Positions 4,666 to 63,000 of a DNA stretch of 64,000 nucleotides are shown here, piece after piece. The DNA lies in IMG/VR virus record IMGVR_UViG_3300017917_002434, positions 124,001 to 188,000 of that record, one strand, 5' to 3'. Numbering within the stretch: position 1 is the first letter of the stretch; every line of letters starts with the position of its first letter. A model generated the notes under the pieces. It did no database searches. It was given only the letters and a program-made list of their open reading frames with translations, and was not told where the DNA came from. The translations under genes were made by a program, and so were the position numbers.

Positions 4666-7600
4666 TTATGGTAATTTTGTACTGCTATTTTGTAAGAACT
4701 TTGCTATAGCGGTCTTACTATAGCTGAGGCCCTGACCGGTTGTAGCTGTATCAATTCCTCTATCGTACCATAGTCTGCCCTGTCTACGGATAACAGTAAT
4801 ACGTGTTCCCGCAGGAACCGGAACAGTTAGTCGAATATTTTCACCAATTCCGTCCACTGAAAATTCTGCTTCTACTTCAACGTCTCCTGCTGGACTATAA
4901 GCACCCACAGTAGGATCATAGATCTTAGTACTATCTTTTCTTAATCTGCGTCCTCCTACAAACACTTCTATGTTATCACATCTTCCAAAATTACTTGGAA
5001 TGGTTGCTCTAAACCAATTAGTAATGTCTGTTTTTTCTGGTACAAAAGTCAATGGTCCTACAAATAAAGAAGTACCATCGGAAACAAAATCTTCTTTTGT
5101 CTGTGACTCTTGATAAGGAACATATTCTAAGTATCCTGTATCAACTACTATTGTATTTTTTGGGTATGATTCTTTGATAGCGGTACCGAACATTCCTCTC
5201 TTGATGTTACGCAGAGTATTTCCTGATTTTTCAAAGTATTGAATCTTTTCCCCTTGGATAGTAATTATTCCAGGCTGATCTTTAGATGGGTTAGGCAAAG
5301 TACTAGCATCTACCATCTTAATTTCGTCATCATAATAATTCAATACAGAATCAAGTTTCAGATCAGTTATTCTAAATCTGTTATAATGATTTCTATTCAA
5401 CACATCTTTGAACAGCTCGAAAGATAATGGTTCTTTGTACAACAGATCTCCGAAACTGATAGTTTCAATAATATCAGTTTCATCAGTGTCTTGCCTTAGA
5501 TATACTGTTCTAGGTAATTCAACGTAGAAATCGATGTCAGGAGTTAATCTAATACCATTCTTATAAACCCAAACATATGAAATACCCGGTAATTCCCGCT
5601 GTAGAGAAAAACTTGTTTTTCCTCCAACAAACTCGTCCTTAAGTATATCTAATTCTGTATATCGTTCAAACCAAGTTATACTTAGAGTGTCACCAGTAGA
5701 GAATGGAGTAAATTGCTCTAGTACAATATTAGTATCATTTATAAAATATTGCCTTCCGGAAGAATCTTCGATTCTAATAGTAGATCCCATTGCTATGGGT
5801 TTTATAAACGTAACTGTATTATTTTCTGATGTAAATGTAAAATCTATACCGAATGTTTTTAATTGATCGTCAACAAATACTTTTAAGTCAGTGAAAATAA
5901 CTGAACCCGGTGCTCTAGGAGTATCAACACCAATTTGAACACTGTTGTTTCCGTCATAGATTTTGTAAGTTGTTTCCACAGTACGTAATAGTTGACCGTT
6001 TAACTCAACTATCATATCCCCAGCAGGATCTAAATCTAATCCACTGAAAGTAGGTATAGCATATTCTCGTATCGAATCATCTAATGTGAGTTCTACGTGA
6101 TTAATTTTAACTAGAGGACGATCAGCAGTCGATAATGCTATTAAGATAATTTTAGTACCTAAAGCAGGTGCTACTCCAAATTCTACTAGAGTTTTGTTTT
6201 CAGTGTCAGTCAATTGGTCGCTATTAATGAAACCCACATCAACTGGTTGATTATTGACACTAGCAAACACTGTTACTGTTTCGTCGAAATCAGCTCCGGT
6301 TATAAAATATCGATCATTACCTGTTCCAACAAATTCTCTGTAATCTAAGATTCCTCGACCGCCGGGTCCCATTGTGAAAATTTCTATTACAGAATTAATT
6401 GCCGGTGCTGTGCCAATAAATCTTATAGAATTAGTTTCTGGTAAAATAACAAATTCAGTATCTATAGATTTTTTAAATTTGTCTACATATACTATAACAT
6501 TTGTTTTTTCTATAATTCTCTGACCTACATCAAAAAGGACCGTGGTTCCATCACCTATATAAATTTTAGATTTGATCGGTGAAGATCCGCTTCTAGAAGA
6601 ATGGAACACTTTGATGCTTAAAGATTCAAGAACTTGGCCTGGAATATTTTCTTCAGGTGCCGGCACTTGTTCTGGACTGATTAATCTATCCCCGTCTAAA
6701 ACTATTTCTGCTGCGGTGGTTCCTGTAGCTGTAGCATACGCTGACATTCCTGATAGACTGCCACCAGATATATAAGCATCGATGCTGTTACGTCCACCAA
6801 TAACTAGGCTACCGTCGCTAGTCGACGGTCTGAATATTAATAAATCTCCAGCTTCTAAGTTTGCTGTCTGAGGAATTATTACAGATGCTGTAGAACCATC
6901 ACCGATAAACGTATTCATTATCGCAGTCGCAGGAGGAATTTCTCCAGTGTAAGAACTGTCTCCTAATTGATATTCATCATAGGTTTCAAAATCTAATCTT
7001 ACAGTTTTTCCTGTTAACACTCTCTTAACGTAGACGTTAATGTTTATATTTTGCTTAGGAACTTCTGGCAATGTTACTGAAGTAGTGCTGCCGTCAACTA
7101 GGAAATAGAAATCAGTTTCGTTAACTTCAGAACTATCCCACCCTTCAGTGAACCAAGGCAACGCATCCCACCCTGCTCCTACATCAAATGTAGCACCCTG
7201 TACTATAGTTCCGCCATAATCGATGCCTGTAATTAACTGAGAATAATCAGAAACTACTTCGCTGGTTTCTGATTCATCTACTCTAGTTTTTTCTACTCCA
7301 GCTTGACCAGGTAATGGTTTGTAATACTTGTCTATTCTGTTTAGACTATCCAATATCTCATCATTCTTCTGATATTTGATTATTACTATGCTATTAGCTT
7401 CCGGAGCACTATTAAGGATTAATCGTCCAATTAATTCAGTTTTAGAATTAATAACCTCTTCAGTTACAGTAATAGAATATTGACTAGATAATAATCTAGA
7501 TCCGTTTAAAGTTACTGTAATCGTAGATCTATCAACCGACAGAGGGTACTTTAATCTATAAGTGGTTTGTTTAGCAGAAGCAGTAAATGTTTCTGTTTCT

Positions 7601-28760: not shown

Positions 28761-29615
28761 ATGACATTAACGCAACCACCAAAAATCAAATACCTTACTA
28801 ATAAGGACTTGTTAGCAGAAATACACAGAAGTAAAAATACATTTTGTTCTTATACTAAACCAGAATATTCGGATTACGATTTAATATTACCTAATCTCGC
28901 CAAGTTAAATGTAAGAACTATAGCAGAAGCCAAAAGAAATAGGGCTGCTAAAGAAAGCAAAAAAGCACACGAAATAGCACAGCAGACAAATAAAAAAGCA
29001 TCTGCTAAAGATTCAGAAATTGACTACAAAAAGATCAACAAACAAGATCTAGTTTTTAGAATCATGACCTTTGATCATGTTCCCTTAGCACCGGGCCGTA
29101 AGAAGACTGTTAAATCTCGTGCCGATAGTCATGAAAAAGTAAACTTTCCTCCGTTCCAACATTGGAAGTTTGACGCCAACGATAACTTGATTTGCGTAGG
29201 TAAAAGTCACTGGAAAGGGGACCTAGAGACCGGCGAGTTCTCTAAGGATCATGGTCAGATGACCAACGACCTAGCACGTATGTTTATCAAGCTCTGTGAG
29301 CGATATGCTACTAGAGGCAACGTCAGAGGCTATACCTACAATGATGAGATGAAAGGACAGGCCATTCTTCAACTAACTCAAATAGGGCTACAATTCGATG
29401 AGAGTAAATCTAATAATCCTTTTGCTTACTATACTGCTGCTGTTACTAATTCATTCGTTAGAATTATCAACATTGAAAAGCGTAATCAAAACATTAGGGA
29501 TGACATACTAGAAATGAATGGTATGAATCCGAGCTGGACAAGGCAGAACAGCGGAGGGAGCGGTGCTATCACTACACCGGGCCCTGTTACAGACGGTGGT
29601 AGCGATTGGGATTGA
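28761..29615 (+). CDS. gp55: Late-transcription sigma factor, gp55-like
   Basis: N-terminal YLTNKDLLAEI and C-terminal LARMFIKLCERYATRGNVRGYTYNDEMKGQAILQLTQIGLQFDESKSNNPFAYYT. Lies directly upstream of gp47/gp46. Confidence 0.8.
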   Translation: MTLTQPPKIKYLTNKDLLAEIHRSKNTFCSYTKPEYSDYDLILPNLAKLNVRTIAEAKRNRAAKESKKAHEIAQQTNKKASAKDSEIDYKKINKQDLVFRIMTFDHVPLAPGRKKTVKSRADSHEKVNFPPFQHWKFDANDNLICVGKSHWKGDLETGEFSKDHGQMTNDLARMFIKLCERYATRGNVRGYTYNDEMKGQAILQLTQIGLQFDESKSNNPFAYYTAAVTNSFVRIINIEKRNQNIRDDILEMNGMNPSWTRQNSGGSGAITTPGPVTDGGSDWD

Positions 29616-33545: not shown

Positions 33546-33553
33546 TATAAATA
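33546..33553 (+). promoter_or_regulatory. T4 consensus late promoter TATAAATA
   Basis: Exact consensus 30 nt upstream of the ATG at 33583. A second TAAATA lies at 33540-33545. Confidence 0.75.
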
Positions 33554-33582: not shown

Positions 33583-34725
33583 ATGAAAATCACTGATATA
33601 TTATCTCAAAAACAGCAGGTCGATGAAGCACCTGTTGGTATGTTGAAAAGAGCAGGTCTAGGTATTGCTTCTAAATTGGGCAGTACAAAAGCTAGTGGTG
33701 CTCTTGATATGGCCAAATATGCTAATGGTCTTAGAAAACAATTTGACTTTTATCTAGGACAAACAGATCAAAAGCCTAATTCTGATGCGTTAATAGCATT
33801 CTTAAAGACCAATGGGTTTCCTACAGCTGGTGCTGAAGCTGCGATCAAACAAGCAGGAGTTGAGGCGGGCATGGCAGGCACAGGCGAAATTGCTAAGTCG
33901 CTTGGAGCGGACAGAGTCGAACCAAATATGGATGAGCCTGGCAGCGACACCAATGCCGCTACCGGCAATCCAGAAACTCCTGCTGCTCCTGAAGCTGGTG
34001 CCGATCAGGCTGCTGATGAAAAACCAGCTGCTGGCGGTGCTTCACAGACACAACCTAATTTCAAACAAGGTAATTATCAAGAACCTACATACAGTATGTC
34101 AACAGGGTTTGACAAAGATACGATGAAGAATACTGATGAGCCATTAGCTCCTGGTGCTGTACAACAGAAACAGAAAAAGAAAAAAGAGAGTATTGGTGAG
34201 TTATCTCGTATTGCTGAATTAGCGGGTGTAAAATACACCCCTGTTCAAGAAGTAATGATCGACGAAGTAGAACTTAAGAACGCAACTGTAGATAAAATCA
34301 TCAAAGCCGCAGTTACAGATATTCTCAAATCAAACATGGGACAAAAACTTGATGCTGTCATCGGCGGTCAAGGTGCTTCAGCACAGTCAATCAGCCAAGC
34401 AGGTGGAGATGCTGGAGATGATCAAGGCGGTGGCGGAATTGGTTCTGCTTTTATGGGCGGCATTAAACGCGGTCTAGCAGGCGGTGATGCTGGTGCCGAA
34501 GGTGGAAAAGTCAAAGGTAATCTTAATTACGGTAAGTTATCTGAATTATTACCTGGTGTGGACCCTAACCAATTAAGAAAATCAATTACTAACTATATGA
34601 GTGGTAATTCTCTGACTAGAGAGCAGATGAGTGTGATGGCTACTGCCTTTGGTGAAATAGTTAAGATGGATCCAGCACAGACTACCAAAGCACTTCAGTT
34701 GTTGAAAGCTGTTCGTGCTGGTTAG
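33583..34725 (+). CDS. Late hypothetical protein, candidate internal head protein (380 aa, A/G/P-rich linkers)
   Basis: Has a late promoter, an N-terminus MKITDILSQKQQVDEAP, and an internal ELSRIAELAGV resembling the scaffold C-terminus IRKLAGL. Confidence 0.55.
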   Translation: MKITDILSQKQQVDEAPVGMLKRAGLGIASKLGSTKASGALDMAKYANGLRKQFDFYLGQTDQKPNSDALIAFLKTNGFPTAGAEAAIKQAGVEAGMAGTGEIAKSLGADRVEPNMDEPGSDTNAATGNPETPAAPEAGADQAADEKPAAGGASQTQPNFKQGNYQEPTYSMSTGFDKDTMKNTDEPLAPGAVQQKQKKKKESIGELSRIAELAGVKYTPVQEVMIDEVELKNATVDKIIKAAVTDILKSNMGQKLDAVIGGQGASAQSISQAGGDAGDDQGGGGIGSAFMGGIKRGLAGGDAGAEGGKVKGNLNYGKLSELLPGVDPNQLRKSITNYMSGNSLTREQMSVMATAFGEIVKMDPAQTTKALQLLKAVRAG

Positions 34726-34958
34726 AAGAACGGTAATCCAGAACTTTTAGTAATATCCATATTGTCCTTAACGATCTCAAGGACAAGTTCTCTTTCATCC
34801 CAACTAAGATTCATAGCTTCAGCGAACGATAATCCGCCCCGCATATACCAAACTGAACGCATAGCTTCTAGTTTGATCTGCCTTGCCTGATTATCAAGGG
34901 CTTTCGACTCGGCTAATACCTCGGGGATACTTAACGTCGAAAGCCGTTGCCGAAAAAA
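34722..34958 (-). CDS. -1 frame extension of the gp26-like tail chaperone (gp51-like / lambda gpT-like segment)
   Basis: Open -1 frame RQRLSTLSIPEVLAESKALDNQARQIKLEAMRSVWYMRGGLSFAEAMNLSWDERELV...GLPFF, entered at slippery T TTT TTC. The conserved LSxxEAxxLxxxER pattern of tail-chaperone extensions is present. Confidence 0.7.
   Translation of the reverse strand, partial: FFRQRLSTLSIPEVLAESKALDNQARQIKLEAMRSVWYMRGGLSFAEAMNLSWDERELVLEIVKDNMDITKSSGLPFF
34899..34958 (-). promoter_or_regulatory. Programmed -1 ribosomal frameshift signal
   Basis: Minus strand: T TTT TTC (34958-34952), a 6-nt spacer, then a perfect 10-bp stem GGCTTTCGAC (34945-34936) / GTCGAAAGCC (34908-34899). Confidence 0.75.
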
Positions 34959-35827
34959 TCCGATTGATCCATTGTCAGTTCTACATCCCATTCGTGCTCG
35001 CACTTTTGGCATTTAGTATGAAAACTGCTTAGATTACCGGTTTCTCTGGTTTTGCTCACTGCGATATTAATCTGTTCGAATACAGATTTTTCAGTTTTTT
35101 GTAAAAATTCTTTAATAAATGCTGGGTCTTCAGTCATACCCGCTGAACTTTCAATCCTAGTGATACAGTTAACAGCAGTGTCAATTGTTAGATCGGTAAG
35201 TTTGATAAAACTCTCTTGAAAGAGCCTTAATTTTTCTTGTTCGTTGATCGTATCATCATTGATAACTTGAAATATACGCTGATGTTCAAATGCCTTTAAG
35301 GCTGTTTTCGTGATTTCCTCGTAAGTCATAGGTCTGAGATATACTATCATCTCTGAACCGATTTCTACTTTAGTATCGAATTTAATCTGATTTAATCTGT
35401 CTAATACTGTGCGAAGATCTACCACAGCGTCATTGACATTTTCACATTTGGGACATCTAACAGAAACTTCCATCTCCTCACCATACGTAGCAATACGAAT
35501 CGCTGACAGCACGGCATCGACATCTAAGCTGGGAATTTTCCATGGATCTAAGATGTTTGGAATACAACTATTGATAACTTCTTTAGTTGCTACTCCGTTC
35601 ATCAATGCGTCGGGAGTCTTGAATAACAATTCATCTCTGGCCGTCATGGCGAACACAGGATATTCATTGTTAGGAGTTTTTTTCAATGCCCCTTCTGGAT
35701 AAAATTCACCTTTTGACGGCAGAGAAACATAGATCTTTGGTTGTCTAAAAAATGCCGACAGCGGATTAGTAGCTGCCGCAGGAGCATTTTGTTGAGACTG
35801 AAACTTGTTTGGATCAAAATCTGGCAT
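34931..35827 (-). CDS. gp26: Baseplate hub / tail assembly chaperone, gp26-like (298 aa; start corrected to MPDFDP at 35827)
   Basis: NPLSAFFRQPKIYVSLPSKG...MTARDELLFKTPDALMNG...DVDAVLSAIRIATYG, two CxxC pairs (CPKC, CQKC), ends DFF. RBS GGTGGA precedes 35827. The ORF-track start at 35911 lies upstream of the late promoter. Confidence 0.75.
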   Translation of the reverse strand: MPDFDPNKFQSQQNAPAAATNPLSAFFRQPKIYVSLPSKGEFYPEGALKKTPNNEYPVFAMTARDELLFKTPDALMNGVATKEVINSCIPNILDPWKIPSLDVDAVLSAIRIATYGEEMEVSVRCPKCENVNDAVVDLRTVLDRLNQIKFDTKVEIGSEMIVYLRPMTYEEITKTALKAFEHQRIFQVINDDTINEQEKLRLFQESFIKLTDLTIDTAVNCITRIESSAGMTEDPAFIKEFLQKTEKSVFEQINIAVSKTRETGNLSSFHTKCQKCEHEWDVELTMDQSDFFGNGFRR

Positions 35828-35838
35828 GTTTTTCCACC

Positions 35839-35846
35839 TATAAATA
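35839..35846 (+). promoter_or_regulatory. T4 consensus late promoter TATAAATA (tape-measure operon)
   Basis: Exact consensus, 58 nt upstream of the ATG at 35905. Confidence 0.7.
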
Positions 35847-35858
35847 AATGTAGCAAGA

Positions 35859-35866
35859 TATTTATA
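35859..35866 (-). promoter_or_regulatory. T4 consensus late promoter TATAAATA (gp26-like gene)
   Basis: The plus strand TATTTATA is an exact consensus on the minus strand, 31 nt upstream of the ATG at 35827. Confidence 0.7.
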
Positions 35867-35904: not shown

Positions 35905-38514
35905 ATGGCAAAAACCACAGTAGAAATCCTCGGAGGAGAGTTAGACGGCACAGTCTTAAACAACATAGCTAGCGAAGCTACTATGCGTGAATTGCTGGCC
36001 GCAGTTAAAGCACAATCCAAATCTGGACCCGGTAGTGGAGTTGGTGGGGGCGGAGCTAGAGGTGGTAGCTCAAAAAATCCTGGCAAAAAGCTCGATGTAA
36101 TGAGTAAGTTAGCTGACGGTCTAGGTAATCAGATAGGTAATGTAATCGGTGCTGTCGGTAGTATGGGTGCTATGTTACTCACTGGTAATACGAGAATGAG
36201 CTCTTACACTAAAACATTAAACGATCAAGTTATCGCTAGATTGCCTGTAGTAGGAGGGCTGTTAGGAGGTCTAGGCGGGATTATCAGTGACAGTATCGAA
36301 GTATTAGAAGATTGGAATGACAGTCTAAGAACTGGTACACAGACAGGTGCTACATTTGGAAATAGTATTTTAAGAGCATCAAAAGCTGCGACATCTGCTG
36401 CTATGGATCTCGATTCATTTATGAGAATGATCAGCAGTAATTCGTCTGTGATGTTGAATCTAGCCGGTACAGTAACTGAGGGTGCTGAAAGATTTAGTAA
36501 GATATCTAGATTGTTAAACAGAGACGGTGGCAAAGCAACCCAGACTCTTAGACAGATGGGTATGAAAGCCAAAGATATCAATGAAGGATTGATCAATTAC
36601 ATTGATATCATGGGCGGAGGAATGTTCCAAGACAAACGCACCAATGAAGAAATAGCAGACGGCTATGAAAAGTTCCAACTTGGAATGATGAGATTAACAT
36701 CTCTCACTGGCAAGAGTGTTAAAAAATTAGAAGAAGAAATGGCTGTAGCATCTAAAGACATCGTATTTAGGATGCAGTTATCGAGATTAGAACCTAAAGA
36801 AAGAACTAAGATGTTAGAAACATTGGCCAACTATACAGCGATGTATGGTCAGGCTGGTGCTGAATTATTCAAATCATTATATCTACAGATGCCCCCAGGA
36901 GACGAACAGGCTAGAAACCTAGCAGTGCTCCAACCGATGCTGGTAAGATCTATGAAAGATTCTATTAACACAGCATTAGATACTAATGTTACTATAGCCC
37001 GTATGTCTACGCAGATTGAAGATGATATCATCAAGGCTATGCTAAAATCTGCTAAGACATCATCTGGTCTAGAAGGATTATTAGCTGCCGCTAGTGCATC
37101 GTTAGGCGATGCTAAAGGCCTTACGGCTGCTTTAAACCCTATAATGAATCAGCTGTTAAAGTACGGCGATATTTCAAAAATCACTGAAAAAGATCTCAGA
37201 GAGATGTTTAAGAAAGCTAGAGATGAACAGAAAGCTCGCGATGCTTTAACGAAATTTATCAACGATTTTGAAATGGCTATGCAGGATCTTAAATTTCAGT
37301 TAATGGAATTTTTATATCCTATGTTAGATGATCTAGGAAGATATCTAGAAAGACAGGACATAGCAGGCAAGGTAAAAATATTTGGAACATGGCTTAAAGA
37401 AAATGTAGACAAATATCTACCTGACGTTATAACATTTTTTAGATATCTAGGTGACGAGGAAGGCAGAGAATTTATTTGGAACGAAGTAACATATTTCTTT
37501 GAACGTATGGGTATCCATATGTTGTACCATGCTAAATCTATGTTTAATCCAGACAAAGTCGGTGATTACGGAAATATCAGAGATGAAGCATTAGAAAGAG
37601 CTATGCAAGACCACGAAGCCAAACAAAATGTACTTCGAAGAAATATGCCAGCACCGTATACGAGGCCAGGAGAACAACCATCAGGTACTGCCGATCGTAG
37701 ACAGCCAGGTCAAGTAAAAGAAACCGGAAGATCAGATCCGAGGGTAACCAGTGCCTCAGAAAAAATCGTCACAGATTTATCAAAGAGAGGATTTGGTATG
37801 GCAAATCCTCTCGGAAAAGGTGCGGCTATACAATCAAATAGTGAGTTCGGAAAAATACGACAATACTATGATAAGGATGGTAAGCTGATCGAAGAAAAAG
37901 CACACATGGGCGAGGATATTAGAGCAAATTTAGCAAAAGTATATGCTGCTATTCCTGGCGAAGTAGTTTATGGTATGCGGGGCGGATATGGATTTGCTGC
38001 CACTATTACAGGTAAAGATGGTGATTACAAAGGTATAGAATTAATTTACGGACACTTGCATAGAAAGGAGTCTGAGCAGATTCGAGCCCGAAGGGACAAA
38101 ACGGATGTCAAGATAGGCGACGAGTTAGGCGTCACAGGAGGAGGACTAGGCGATCCTGGAGCAGGCACATCGACTGGACGTCACCTCCATTTTGAAGCTA
38201 GAAAAGACGGTGTGCCGTTCAACCCCATGTCTCTAATTAAACCAGGAATGAACACCGGAACGCTAGGAGTGTACGGAACATTGTTCAAAGATTTTGGTTC
38301 AGCAACAGATGTTGTATTAGATGGAAATAAGGCTGTTATGACTCCAGAACAGATGAATAATGTAATGGCCGGTGCCGGAACTATAGCTACGAGAGAGTTG
38401 TTAGATTCAATAGACGCAAATTTTGCTAGATTAGAATCTTTGATGAGAGAACGTACTAACTTGTCAAGATCACAACTTACCCATATAGAAAATAATCGAG
38501 TGACAATAGCATAA
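35905..38514 (+). CDS. Tape-measure-like protein 1 with M23-family peptidase domain
   Basis: Long A/G/M/L-rich helical body. HMGED (HxxxD, near 37903) and HLHFE (HxH, near 38182) with LIYGHL and VKIGDELGVTG are M23 motifs. Confidence 0.7.
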   Translation: MAKTTVEILGGELDGTVLNNIASEATMRELLAAVKAQSKSGPGSGVGGGGARGGSSKNPGKKLDVMSKLADGLGNQIGNVIGAVGSMGAMLLTGNTRMSSYTKTLNDQVIARLPVVGGLLGGLGGIISDSIEVLEDWNDSLRTGTQTGATFGNSILRASKAATSAAMDLDSFMRMISSNSSVMLNLAGTVTEGAERFSKISRLLNRDGGKATQTLRQMGMKAKDINEGLINYIDIMGGGMFQDKRTNEEIADGYEKFQLGMMRLTSLTGKSVKKLEEEMAVASKDIVFRMQLSRLEPKERTKMLETLANYTAMYGQAGAELFKSLYLQMPPGDEQARNLAVLQPMLVRSMKDSINTALDTNVTIARMSTQIEDDIIKAMLKSAKTSSGLEGLLAAASASLGDAKGLTAALNPIMNQLLKYGDISKITEKDLREMFKKARDEQKARDALTKFINDFEMAMQDLKFQLMEFLYPMLDDLGRYLERQDIAGKVKIFGTWLKENVDKYLPDVITFFRYLGDEEGREFIWNEVTYFFERMGIHMLYHAKSMFNPDKVGDYGNIRDEALERAMQDHEAKQNVLRRNMPAPYTRPGEQPSGTADRRQPGQVKETGRSDPRVTSASEKIVTDLSKRGFGMANPLGKGAAIQSNSEFGKIRQYYDKDGKLIEEKAHMGEDIRANLAKVYAAIPGEVVYGMRGGYGFAATITGKDGDYKGIELIYGHLHRKESEQIRARRDKTDVKIGDELGVTGGGLGDPGAGTSTGRHLHFEARKDGVPFNPMSLIKPGMNTGTLGVYGTLFKDFGSATDVVLDGNKAVMTPEQMNNVMAGAGTIATRELLDSIDANFARLESLMRERTNLSRSQLTHIENNRVTIA

Positions 38515-60000: not shown

Positions 60001-63000
60001 CAAACTACAGATTCTGTTAATATTGAAGCGAGAATTAACAGCGATATCATTCCTAAATTAAACGATACTTATGATCTAGGAACTACAGTCGAACGCTGGA
60101 GACAGATATTTGTTAATAAATTAACTGCTGACAATATAGAAATCGTAGACAATAAGATTTCTACGTTAGATTCAAACAGCGACCTCGAGTTATCAGCAGC
60201 CGGAACAGGTAAAGTTCTTATTCCTAACAATGACCTACAAGTAAACAGTACTTTCACAGTCATAGGAACTACTAATCTACAAAATACTAATGTCGTAGGT
60301 AATTTAAACCTTACAGGTAACTCTACTATAACAGGCGATGTAGTACAAAACGGAGACCTTAGCGTTACCGGATCGTTCTTTTCAGCTTCCTTAGATCTTG
60401 AAAATATCGAGATAGTTGAAAACAATATTAGAACCAAAAACAGTAATCAAGACCTACAACTAGAAGCAGCGGGTACTGGTAGGATTTATATTCCATCCAA
60501 CGACGTTCAGATGGATCAAGACCTTACAGTTTTAGGCACGATTACTGGTCCTGTGATCAATAACACTGGAACAATTACATCTAGTACATTTACTAACAAT
60601 AACATTGTCATAAGCACCAATACTATTGCTGCGACAACATCGAATTCGGATCTAGAACTTAGATCAAATGGTACAGGAAAAGTATATGTTTCCAACAGTG
60701 ACGTACAGATCGACGAAGATCTAGAAGTCATCGGCGATACTAACTTAGCAGTTACAAATATCACAGGTACACTGACAGTTAATGGAAACATAGTACAGAC
60801 TGGCAATTATACACAAACTGGCGATCTAACCATAACAGGAAATCTTTCAGTTGGCGACGCAGCTCAATTTGAAAATATTCTTGTTGACGATAATTTTATC
60901 ACAACTACTGTATCAAACAGCGACTTAGAATTAAGAGCGGCAGGCACAGGTAGTGTAATTATTGACGGAACTGATTTAGAAGTACTAGGAAATCTTAACG
61001 TAGTTAATACATTAACTGCTAATTCTCTAAACATAGCTACAGACATTACTGCTGACAGATATACTAACGGTAATATTCTCATCGAAAATAATGTAATATC
61101 AACGACATTATCAAACAGCGATTTAGAACTTAGAGCTAACGGTGTAGGAATTGTACAGGTTACTAGTGATGCTAATATAGATCAAAGTCTAACTGTGTCT
61201 GGAATAACTACGCTGTTAGGATCTACAAATGATGTTACTGGGGTAATAAATCATGTAGGCGATCTTAATCAAACAGGTACAACTACTCATACCGGAGATT
61301 ACTCTTTAACCGGTAATCTCACAGTTGATACTTACGCTCAGTTCGAGAATATACGCATTGACGGCAACCAACTGTACACTACAGAATCAAATAGCAATCT
61401 TGAACTAGCAGCCAGCGGCGTAGGAATAATTTCTATACCTAATAACGACGTAGTAGCAGGACAGAATCTCACTGTCAACGGAACACTGACCGTCGAAAAC
61501 ATTTCTTTAACTATTCTTGAAACAGAAATAGTACAGACTAGCGACATTCGCATACAAAATAATTTTATTACCACTACTCTGTCAAACAGCAATCTCGAAT
61601 TACGTGCCAACGGCACAGGAGAAGTCGTAGTTCCTAACGCAGATGTTGTAGTACAGAACGATTTTACAGTACAGGGCAACACAAATTTACAGAATACAGG
61701 TATAACCGGAACACTAACACAAGTTGGCAATACAACACATACCGGAAATACTACACAAACCGGAGATTACACATTAAACGGTAATTTAGATGTCAGCGGC
61801 CTAGCAGAGATTGCGGATATACAGATTAACGGTAATCAAATTTCATCCATTAACGGATTGAATCTAGTCCTAGATGCTCCCGGATCTGGTATAGTCTACA
61901 TACCAGAAAATGATGTATTAATAGAAAACGACTTATTTGTTAACGGTACACTGTACGCTAACAACGTCATAGGTACTTTTGGATCATTACAATCTAATGA
62001 GATAGATACCGGCGATATTGTAGTACGCGGTAATAGAATTACTACAACACTTTCAAACAGCGACCTTGAATTACGTGCTAACGGCACGGGGTCTGTAATA
62101 ATTGACAACACAGATTTAATCGTAAACGGTGACCTAATAGTTACTACAGATGTACAATTAAACAACACACAGATTACCGGAACACTGACTCACAATGGTA
62201 CTGCTAATCATACAGGAACTGTAAATCAAACTGGAGCATATAATTTAACCGGAAATATGAATATCACCGGTACTGCTCAATACAGCAATATTCGTGTAGA
62301 AGGCAACGTTATTAGAACTACAGTACCAGGCAGCGATCTAACTTTCCAGGCCACGGGTGCCGGCATAATCACTGCTCCTTTCAATGACGTTGAGATAACA
62401 CAGAATTTAACTGTATCGGGGGATGTAACTACTACTGATATAGTAGCTTCAAACTCAGTTACAGCACCGATTATCAACTTAGGTTCTATAACTATCAGCG
62501 GTAACCTTATTACCACAAACACATCTAATACCAATTTAGAACTTAGAGCTAACGGCACCGGCGGAATAGAATTAGAGTCTATCATAGTCAATCAAAATCA
62601 GATTACTACTCAAAATAACACAGATATTGTTATCGCTCCAAACGGCACAGGTATCGTTGATTTCCAGGGTACACAGGCCGTAAGATTGCCGAGAGGGACA
62701 GTGGCAGAACGTCCAGTTGGTCAAGCTGGTCAATTGAGATATAACACTACCAGCAATTATTACGAAGGTTTCGACGGAACAAATTGGCGTAGATTAGACG
62801 GTGTTTATGACCTAGATGAAAATACCTACATAACTCCAGAGACTACTCCCGGAGCCAATGATAACGTTATTAGTTTTTACATTAATGGTCTGAATCGTGC
62901 TACCTTAAACGCTACAGGATTTTCTACAAGTAACGTAGATATAGGCAATATAAATATCACGGGTAATACGATTTCTACTACCAATACTGACGGGAACTTA

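Follow-up and report, generated by a model that had tools for sequence, protein, structure and literature searches.

Long-tailed phages typically make two tail assembly chaperones from one gene by a -1 ribosomal frameshift, as in gpG and gpGT of lambda and gpE and E+E' of P2, the latter at T_TTT_TTG (Xu, Hendrix and Duda 2004). The two products share an N-terminal body, and the slip site lies a few codons before the stop of the short form. The long form carries a short C-terminal extension domain, and the gene is associated with the tape-measure gene. In phage T4, gp26 and gp51 are listed as hub assembly chaperones and gp51 is absent from particles (PMC3004832). They are encoded by two separate paralogous genes on opposite strands. 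T4 gp51 residues 1-201 are a full PF12322 domain (E 4e-52), followed by Gp51_C. T4-like cyanophages (Kyanoviridae) have a gp26 gene and a small ORF labeled 'gp51 / baseplate hub assembly catalyst', annotated as two independent genes. We found no paper describing a gp26/gp51 frameshift in full-text searches, which did not cover subscription journals.

A predicted -1 frameshift signal in a gp26-like gene

We analyzed a 64,000-nt stretch (the window) of a 269.7-kb contig. The phage is a jumbo phage with T4-like core genes, and not a T4-like phage in the narrow sense. Megablast of the region against GenBank phages found nothing. The following features were identified:

34931..35827 (-): gp26-like gene, zero frame, 298 aa plus stop (ATG at 35827, TAA at 34933-34931), the short form of the proposed hub/tail assembly chaperone, with two CxxC pairs
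34952..34958 (-): slippery heptamer T_TTT_TTC in X_XXY_YYZ phase
34946..34951 (-): 6-nt spacer (GGCAAC) between the heptamer and the stem
34899..34945 (-): putative stimulatory stem-loop, in which GGCTTTCGAC at 34945-34936 pairs perfectly with GTCGAAAGCC at 34908-34899 (10 bp), with inner helices in the 27-nt loop
34722..34952 (-): -1 frame extension, 76 codons (34952-34725) plus stop (34724-34722), the predicted helical, Gp51_C-like C-terminal domain of the long form
35859..35866 (-): TATAAATA, a T4-type late-promoter core upstream of the gp26-like gene
35905..38514 (+): divergent neighbor, 869 aa with a Peptidase_M23 domain, a probable tape measure protein and the presumed client of the chaperone

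The anatomy described in the initial annotation, which proposed a -1 frameshift joining a gp26-like ORF to a gp51-like ORF, is correct in every detail. The predicted products are 298 aa and 292+76 = 368 aa, and the predicted junction peptide is DQSDFFRQR, with the shift between FF and RQR. The zero-frame protein matches PF12322 T4_baseplate (E 2e-15, 57.5 bits against a gathering threshold of 24.5, profile positions 24-218 of 219) and phrog_150 'baseplate hub' (E 8.5e-22). Its AF2 model has a mean pLDDT of 78. A GGTGG Shine-Dalgarno lies 6 nt before the ATG. The late-promoter core has 4 matches in the window, 3 of them just upstream of late-type genes, and a gp55-like late sigma factor is encoded at 28761-29615.

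The stem is more than chance would give. The 59-nt segment folds at -22 kcal/mol (z = -3.7), and 0 of 200 dinucleotide shuffles fold as well. The window holds only about 8 distinct perfect stems of 10 bp or more with loops of 3-60 nt per strand (10 start positions). Thus, a stem starting 4-9 nt after a given site is roughly a 1-in-1000 event. The stem is conserved in the window's clade with 3 compensatory pairs, although this covariation is modest, as 8 of the 10 outer-stem pairs never vary.

Conservation of the slip site and the extension

T_TTT_TTY is present in the same phase in 139 of 139 related loci (T_TTT_TTT in two of them). In the first sets, the 56 loci share 28-100% protein identity with the window or are distant Pfam-only relatives, and include CBB, XacN1, PBECO4, PA5oct, RaK2, RAS14, Atu_ph07, Phosso and three cyanophages. 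The other 83 loci are from IMG/VR. In these 83 loci the preceding codon is AGT, TCT, GCT, AAT, GAT, CAT or GGT, so the amino acid varies but the third base is always T. XacN1 and RAS14 prefer TTC elsewhere in the gene (12:3 and 8:1), yet use TTT TTT at this site. The heptamer alone is not proof, however, as the FF motif is conserved as protein across the family, including T4 gp26, and two non-frameshifting short paralogs still carry AAT TTT TTC or GAT TTT TTT.

Protein conservation in the -1 frame (R-x-R-L-L...E-I-L) begins at the first codon after the slip. In 26 of 32 lineages there is no start codon in the -1 frame upstream of the slip site, and no Shine-Dalgarno is conserved. In several lineages the first start is at extension position 37-41, and PA5oct has none in the first 44 extension codons.

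Downstream structure starts 4-8 nt after the heptamer in most clades, with 3' arms at non-homologous positions. When the MFE of the 90 nt downstream was compared with same-locus controls, 14 of 31 lineages were in the most stable 5%. The strong 3' stem noted in the initial annotation is real in the window but not universal across lineages. PBECO4, Turkey5, RaK2, RAS14 and cyanophage S-8S29 show nothing beyond background, and P-SSM3 is weak.

A profile search with the extension found 462 relatives, including natural in-frame fusions. About 20 metagenomic clusters (at 50% identity) encode 319-351-aa proteins with the junction F-R-x-K/R-L-I in one frame. In 3 of 3 looked up, a short PF12322 paralog lies immediately upstream, in similar synteny. 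The extension is helical in the AF2 model of a natural long form.

Relationship to T4 gp26/gp51 and to lambda G/GT

The link to gp51 proposed in the initial annotation holds, with a correction. The -1 ORF is not a whole gp51, but appears to correspond only to its C-terminal domain, the rest of gp51 being a paralog of gp26. The predicted long form appears to have the gp51 architecture, a PF12322 domain plus a Gp51_C-like (PF28602) tail, with the same junction motif (F-K/R-L-L...D/E-E-I). Profile-profile comparison of the cyanophage extension with the gp51 C-terminus gave an hhalign probability of 96% and E 2.8e-9, with 0/100 shuffles as high. The jumbo-phage extension matches only weakly (E 1e-4 to 1e-5, with 1/200 shuffles as high), and cyanophage against jumbo extension gave E 3e-4. 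Precomputed Pfam hits to Gp51_C are not recorded on the jumbo small ORF or on the in-frame long forms. Pfam, PHROGs and NCBIfam searches with the 76-78-aa extension gave no hits. BLASTP of the window and cyanophage extensions against T4 gp51 found nothing significant, and hhalign against single T4 sequences was weak or misplaced. For the in-frame long forms, hhalign to the gp51 family aligned only the N-terminal body (E 8e-5). In T4, gene 25 follows gene 26 in the -1 frame, but the extension, having no Pfam hit, does not match GPW_gp25.

T4 gp26 is about 90 aa shorter than the window protein and encodes FF as TTC TTT, which is not slippery. The cyanophages share the arrangement of the window, with T_TTT_TTC 3 nt before the gp26 stop and a -1 ORF of 60-68 aa. 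Their extension lacks about 15 residues, and downstream structure is weak in two of the three cultured examples. In our tree, T4-type gp26 and gp51 are sister clades, and together are sister to the cyanophage frameshift genes. The metagenomic two-gene lineages nest inside the jumbo frameshift clade.

The order sheath-tube-[gp26-like]-[small ORF]-tape measure, the classic G/GT position, is found in three distant myoviruses (immuto, HSE3 and BRock). In the window, however, the gene is divergent from and adjacent to the tape-measure-like gene, with no tube gene beside it, and in T4 it is also divergent from the hub/tape-measure cluster. The neighbor has a Pfam M23 domain (E 3.7e-9). Its nearest language-model clusters are 'phage tail tape measure protein' with M23 (scores 0.89-0.90), which is a lead only. 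The gene at the same position in RaK2 is annotated as similar to a tape measure protein, and the CBB counterpart is an abundant virion protein.

The protein family (PF12322, a zinc-ribbon alpha/beta body) differs from that of lambda G/GT. No Pfam, NCBIfam or PHROG TAC family was hit, a PDB sequence search gave no match, and Foldseek against PDB and AFDB Swiss-Prot gave no meaningful match. BFVD matches are all 'baseplate hub' relatives. The T-rich heptamer resembles that of P2.

We infer with high confidence that the gp26-like late gene makes two proteins from one mRNA. Most ribosomes would read through the heptamer and stop at TAA six codons later, giving the 298-aa form. A fraction would slip back one base on U_UUU_UUC, where both tRNA-Phe can re-pair with UUU, probably helped by the stem-loop 6 nt downstream, and read 76 further codons to give the 368-aa form. 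The two forms are proposed to act as lambda gpG and gpGT do. The shared zinc-ribbon body would hold the tape-measure/hub protein encoded next door, and the extra domain on the rarer long form would dock that complex to another tail or hub component during assembly. T4 and some metagenomic relatives make the same two forms from two paralogous genes instead (gp26 is the short form, gp51 the long form).

Alternative explanations and implications

It is possible, though unlikely, that the downstream ORF is a separate small gene, translated from its own start or by termination-reinitiation at the gp26-like stop. It is annotated as a separate CDS in CBB, XacN1, Turkey5, PBECO4, Phosso and the cyanophages. 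Atu_ph07 and Phosso have an ATGA stop/start overlap, and in these, Turkey5 and a few others an ATG overlaps or just follows the stop, so translational coupling is possible. In HSE3 and BRock the homologous small ORF is in the +1 frame and may start on its own. However, the window has no start codon between the slip site and extension codon 31, and no Shine-Dalgarno. The conserved first 20-30 residues would go untranslated, and gene callers pick starts at profile positions 1 to 37 in different relatives. The in-frame fusions and T4 gp51 show that the domain works attached to a PF12322 body.

Equally unlikely is transcriptional slippage of RNA polymerase, giving mRNAs with one base fewer. The site is a run of 6 T, or 7 T in XacN1 and RAS14, and several lineages lack a convincing downstream RNA structure. 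However, efficient transcriptional slippage usually appears to need runs of about 8-9 or more, and would not require the exact X_XXY_YYZ phase, with the X base conserved regardless of the amino acid. Many clades also have a stem at the canonical 4-8 nt spacing. That the heptamer and open -1 frame are relics or chance is very unlikely, as, although the two short paralogs mentioned above keep the heptamer without a usable -1 frame, the -1 ORF is conserved as protein over lineages sharing about 30% identity or less, is fused in frame in other lineages, and appears to be homologous to a domain of an essential T4 protein.

Somewhat more likely than not, the -1 frameshift is the ancestral way in which the whole T4 superfamily, and possibly most myoviruses carrying a PF12322 gene, makes its tape-measure/hub chaperones. 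On this reading gp26/gp51 are the long-sought G/GT equivalents of T4. The frameshift would have been replaced at least twice, independently, by duplication into a short and a long gene, and would be expressed but unannotated in hundreds of sequenced jumbo phages and in the abundant marine T4-like cyanophages.

The -1 frameshift in tail assembly chaperone genes is one of the most conserved features of long-tailed phages, to which T4-type phages appear to have been the conspicuous exception. If our finding holds, this exception would disappear. A mis-annotation would be corrected in many genomes (a small 'gp51' or hypothetical ORF, or no ORF at all as in RaK2 and PA5oct), including those of therapeutic-candidate jumbo phages and ecologically dominant cyanophages. 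T4 gp26 and gp51, essential hub-assembly factors of unknown mechanism for about 50 years, would gain a concrete and testable role as the short and long forms of a tape-measure/hub chaperone, and the alternation between a frameshift and two genes would become a natural experiment showing that both forms are needed.

The gp26-like gene and its genomic setting

We confirmed the sequence features of the proposed slip site, which lies on the minus strand. The zero-frame ORF ends GAT TTT TTC GGC AAC GGC TTT CGA CGT TAA, and the heptamer T_TTT_TTC is in X_XXY_YYZ phase. The product sizes (298 and 368 aa) and the junction peptide (DQSDFFRQR) predicted in the initial annotation are correct. The features of the region are as follows.

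35827 to 34931, minus strand: 298-aa zero-frame ORF, with its TAA stop at 34933-34931
34958-34952, minus strand: heptamer T_TTT_TTC, followed by a 6-nt spacer
34945-34936 and 34908-34899, minus strand: GGCTTTCGAC and GTCGAAAGCC, which pair perfectly across a 27-nt loop
34724-34722, minus strand: stop codon of the -1 frame, which runs for 76 codons
33583-34725, plus strand: convergent 380-aa ORF
35905-38514, divergent: 869-aa protein with an M23 peptidase domain
28761-29615: gp55-like late sigma factor
33546-33553 (plus), 35839-35846 (plus), 35859-35866 (minus) and 62949-62956 (plus): TATAAATA, the T4 late-promoter core

The 59-nt segment containing the stem folds at -22 kcal/mol (z -3.7, with 0 of 200 shuffles as stable). 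Perfect stems of 10 bp or more with short loops occur only about 8 times per strand in the 64-kb window. The stop codon of the -1 extension overlaps that of the convergent ORF (at 34722-34725), leaving no room for a terminator between them.

The zero-frame protein is a member of Pfam PF12322 T4_baseplate (E 2e-15) and of phrog_150 'baseplate hub', and has two CxxC pairs. The extension alone hits no family in the libraries searched. The window comes from a 269.7-kb IMG/VR contig and carries T4-like core genes, including those for the gp55-like late sigma factor, gp46/47-like SbcCD and a portal. The late-promoter core occurs only 4 times in the window, against 9.6 expected, and three of the copies sit just upstream of late-type genes (ORF 33583-34725, the tape-measure-like gene and the gp26-like gene). 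The ATG of the gp26-like gene is preceded by GGTGG. The nearest language-model clusters of the divergent neighbour are tape-measure proteins, and the gene at the same position in RaK2 is annotated as tape-measure-like.

Conservation of the slip site and of the -1 extension

We identified 44 IMG/VR loci at 39-100% identity, and 97 records from GenBank phages at about 26-35% identity. In all 56 loci of the first sets (the 44 IMG/VR loci plus Atu_ph07, Phosso, CBB, XacN1, Turkey5, PBECO4, PA5oct, RaK2, RAS14 and the cyanophages B3, P-SSM3 and S-8S29), T_TTT_TTY lies in phase 3-33 nt before the zero-frame stop and is followed by a 60-80-codon -1 ORF. Two further scans added 80 cyanophage-type and 3 RaK2-type loci. 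All 83 have T_TTT_TTC, and 79 of them have a complete -1 ORF (the other 4 are cut by contig ends). In those 83 loci the codon before the heptamer is AGT, TCT, GCT, AAT, GAT, CAT or GGT, so that the amino acid varies but the base in the X position never does. This is selection on the nucleotide. XacN1 and RAS14 prefer TTC elsewhere in the gene but use TTT TTT at this site.

In 26 of 32 lineages the -1 frame has no start codon between its upstream stop (often only 0-3 codons away) and the slip site, and no Shine-Dalgarno is conserved. PA5oct has no start codon in the first 44 extension codons, and in several lineages the first start is the Met of the conserved WYMRGG motif, at position 37-41. 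Yet protein conservation (R-x-R-L-L-x-L-x-x-x-E-I-L) begins with the first codon after the slip. Gene callers chose starts at many different profile positions in different relatives. The ORF is not annotated at all in the RefSeq records of PA5oct (2040-2258 in our extracted locus) and RaK2 (2037-2249), and in other records it is a 'hypothetical protein' with varying starts.

The stem is conserved in the window's clade with three compensatory pairs. One of these, A-U to U-A, is in the outer stem and changes an amino acid on each arm, although eight of the ten outer pairs never vary. Other clades have different stems, whose 5' arm starts 4-8 nt after the heptamer and whose 3' arm lies at non-homologous positions. 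In 14 of 31 lineages the downstream 90 nt are in the most stable 5% of same-locus controls, but PBECO4, Turkey5, RaK2, RAS14 and S-8S29 show nothing special and P-SSM3 is weak. Thus, the stimulator is lineage-specific and may be dispensable.

In-frame long forms and the relationship to T4 gp26 and gp51

A profile search with the extension found 462 relatives among 1.84 billion representatives. About 20 clusters are proteins of 319-351 aa in which a gp26-like body is fused in frame to the extension, with a junction (..F-R-x-K/R-L-I..) that is the same as the predicted trans-frame junction minus one Phe. One very long protein (P0129, 2476 aa) matched the profile in 8 separate stretches (E 8e-13), and may represent a repeat or coiled-coil artefact, or a repeated domain. 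All three of the in-frame fusions that we looked up (metagenomic loci L061, L062 and L063) lie in similar synteny (a large protein of about 740-775 aa and portal on one side in L062 and L063, SbcCD on the other in L063), and each has a second, short PF12322 paralog immediately upstream. Short paralogs in these two-gene lineages (L061 411-1295 and L062 3980-4939) still end in NFF or DFF, encoded AAT TTT TTC or GAT TTT TTT, although the -1 frame behind them is closed or unrelated. This is an apparent relic of a former slip site, and also a caution that the heptamer alone is not proof.

T4 gene 26 (208 aa) ends ..KEFFELL, with FF encoded TTC TTT, and is followed by gene 25, whereas gene 51 lies on the other strand at the head of the 51-27-28-29 cluster. 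T4 also makes gp26' from an internal in-frame start within gene 26 (5803-6090 in our extracted T4 locus), and therefore has three nested or related PF12322-derived products (gp26, gp26' and gp51). T4 gp51 residues 1-201 are a full PF12322 domain (E 4e-52). Thus, gp26 and gp51 are paralogs, and gp51 carries an extra C-terminal domain that Pfam now calls Gp51_C. Cyanophage records label the small -1 ORF 'gp51', and profile-profile comparison places the cyanophage extension on the C-terminus of the gp51 family (probability 96%, E 2.8e-9, 0 of 100 column shuffles as high). The jumbo-phage extension aligns to the same stretch more weakly (E 1e-4 to 1e-5, 1 of 200 shuffles as high), and comparison of the cyanophage with the jumbo extension gives E 3e-4. 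All three alignments centre on the same ..NLxPxER.. motif.

A maximum-likelihood tree (midpoint root, and with some long branches) puts T4-type gp26 and gp51 as sister clades that together are sister to the cyanophage frameshift genes, and nests the metagenomic two-gene lineages inside the jumbo frameshift clade. The simplest reading is that the frameshift is ancestral and was replaced by duplication at least twice.

Predicted structure and inferred function

AlphaFold2 models a natural long form with mean pLDDT 89.7 and pTM 0.81. The predicted body is an alpha/beta fold with zinc-ribbon hairpins, and the extension is predicted to form three to four helices. The model of the window's short form has pLDDT 78. 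Foldseek found no solved or Swiss-Prot counterpart, and among viral models found only 'baseplate hub' relatives, spread across many myovirus groups.

T4 gp26 and gp51 are listed as hub assembly chaperones, and gp51 is essential but absent from particles (PMC3004832). In Flavobacterium phage immuto, Bacillus phage HSE3 and Streptomyces phage BRock, the gp26-like gene and a small ORF lie between the tube gene and the tape-measure gene (annotated 'endolysin' in BRock), which is the classic G/GT position. The small ORF of these distant myoviruses is in the +1 frame and there is no T run, which could mean a +1 shift or independent initiation. The HSE3 and BRock small ORFs align to the extension (E 3e-5 and 8e-4, respectively). 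Together with the tape-measure-like neighbour in the window, this supports the G/GT analogy by position and logic, although it is not supported by family membership or by any experiment.

We conclude that the frameshift, which is inferred from sequence and its conservation, is very likely real. We found no publication describing it in full-text searches, which did not cover subscription literature. The equivalence of the two products to T4 gp26 and gp51 is well supported, although the jumbo-phage extension matches the gp51 C-terminus only weakly, and the tape-measure-chaperone mechanism is a reasonable inference, somewhat more likely than not. The G/GT principle is already known, but here it would apply in a different protein family, spanning jumbo phages and marine cyanophages, with T4 as the two-gene derivative.
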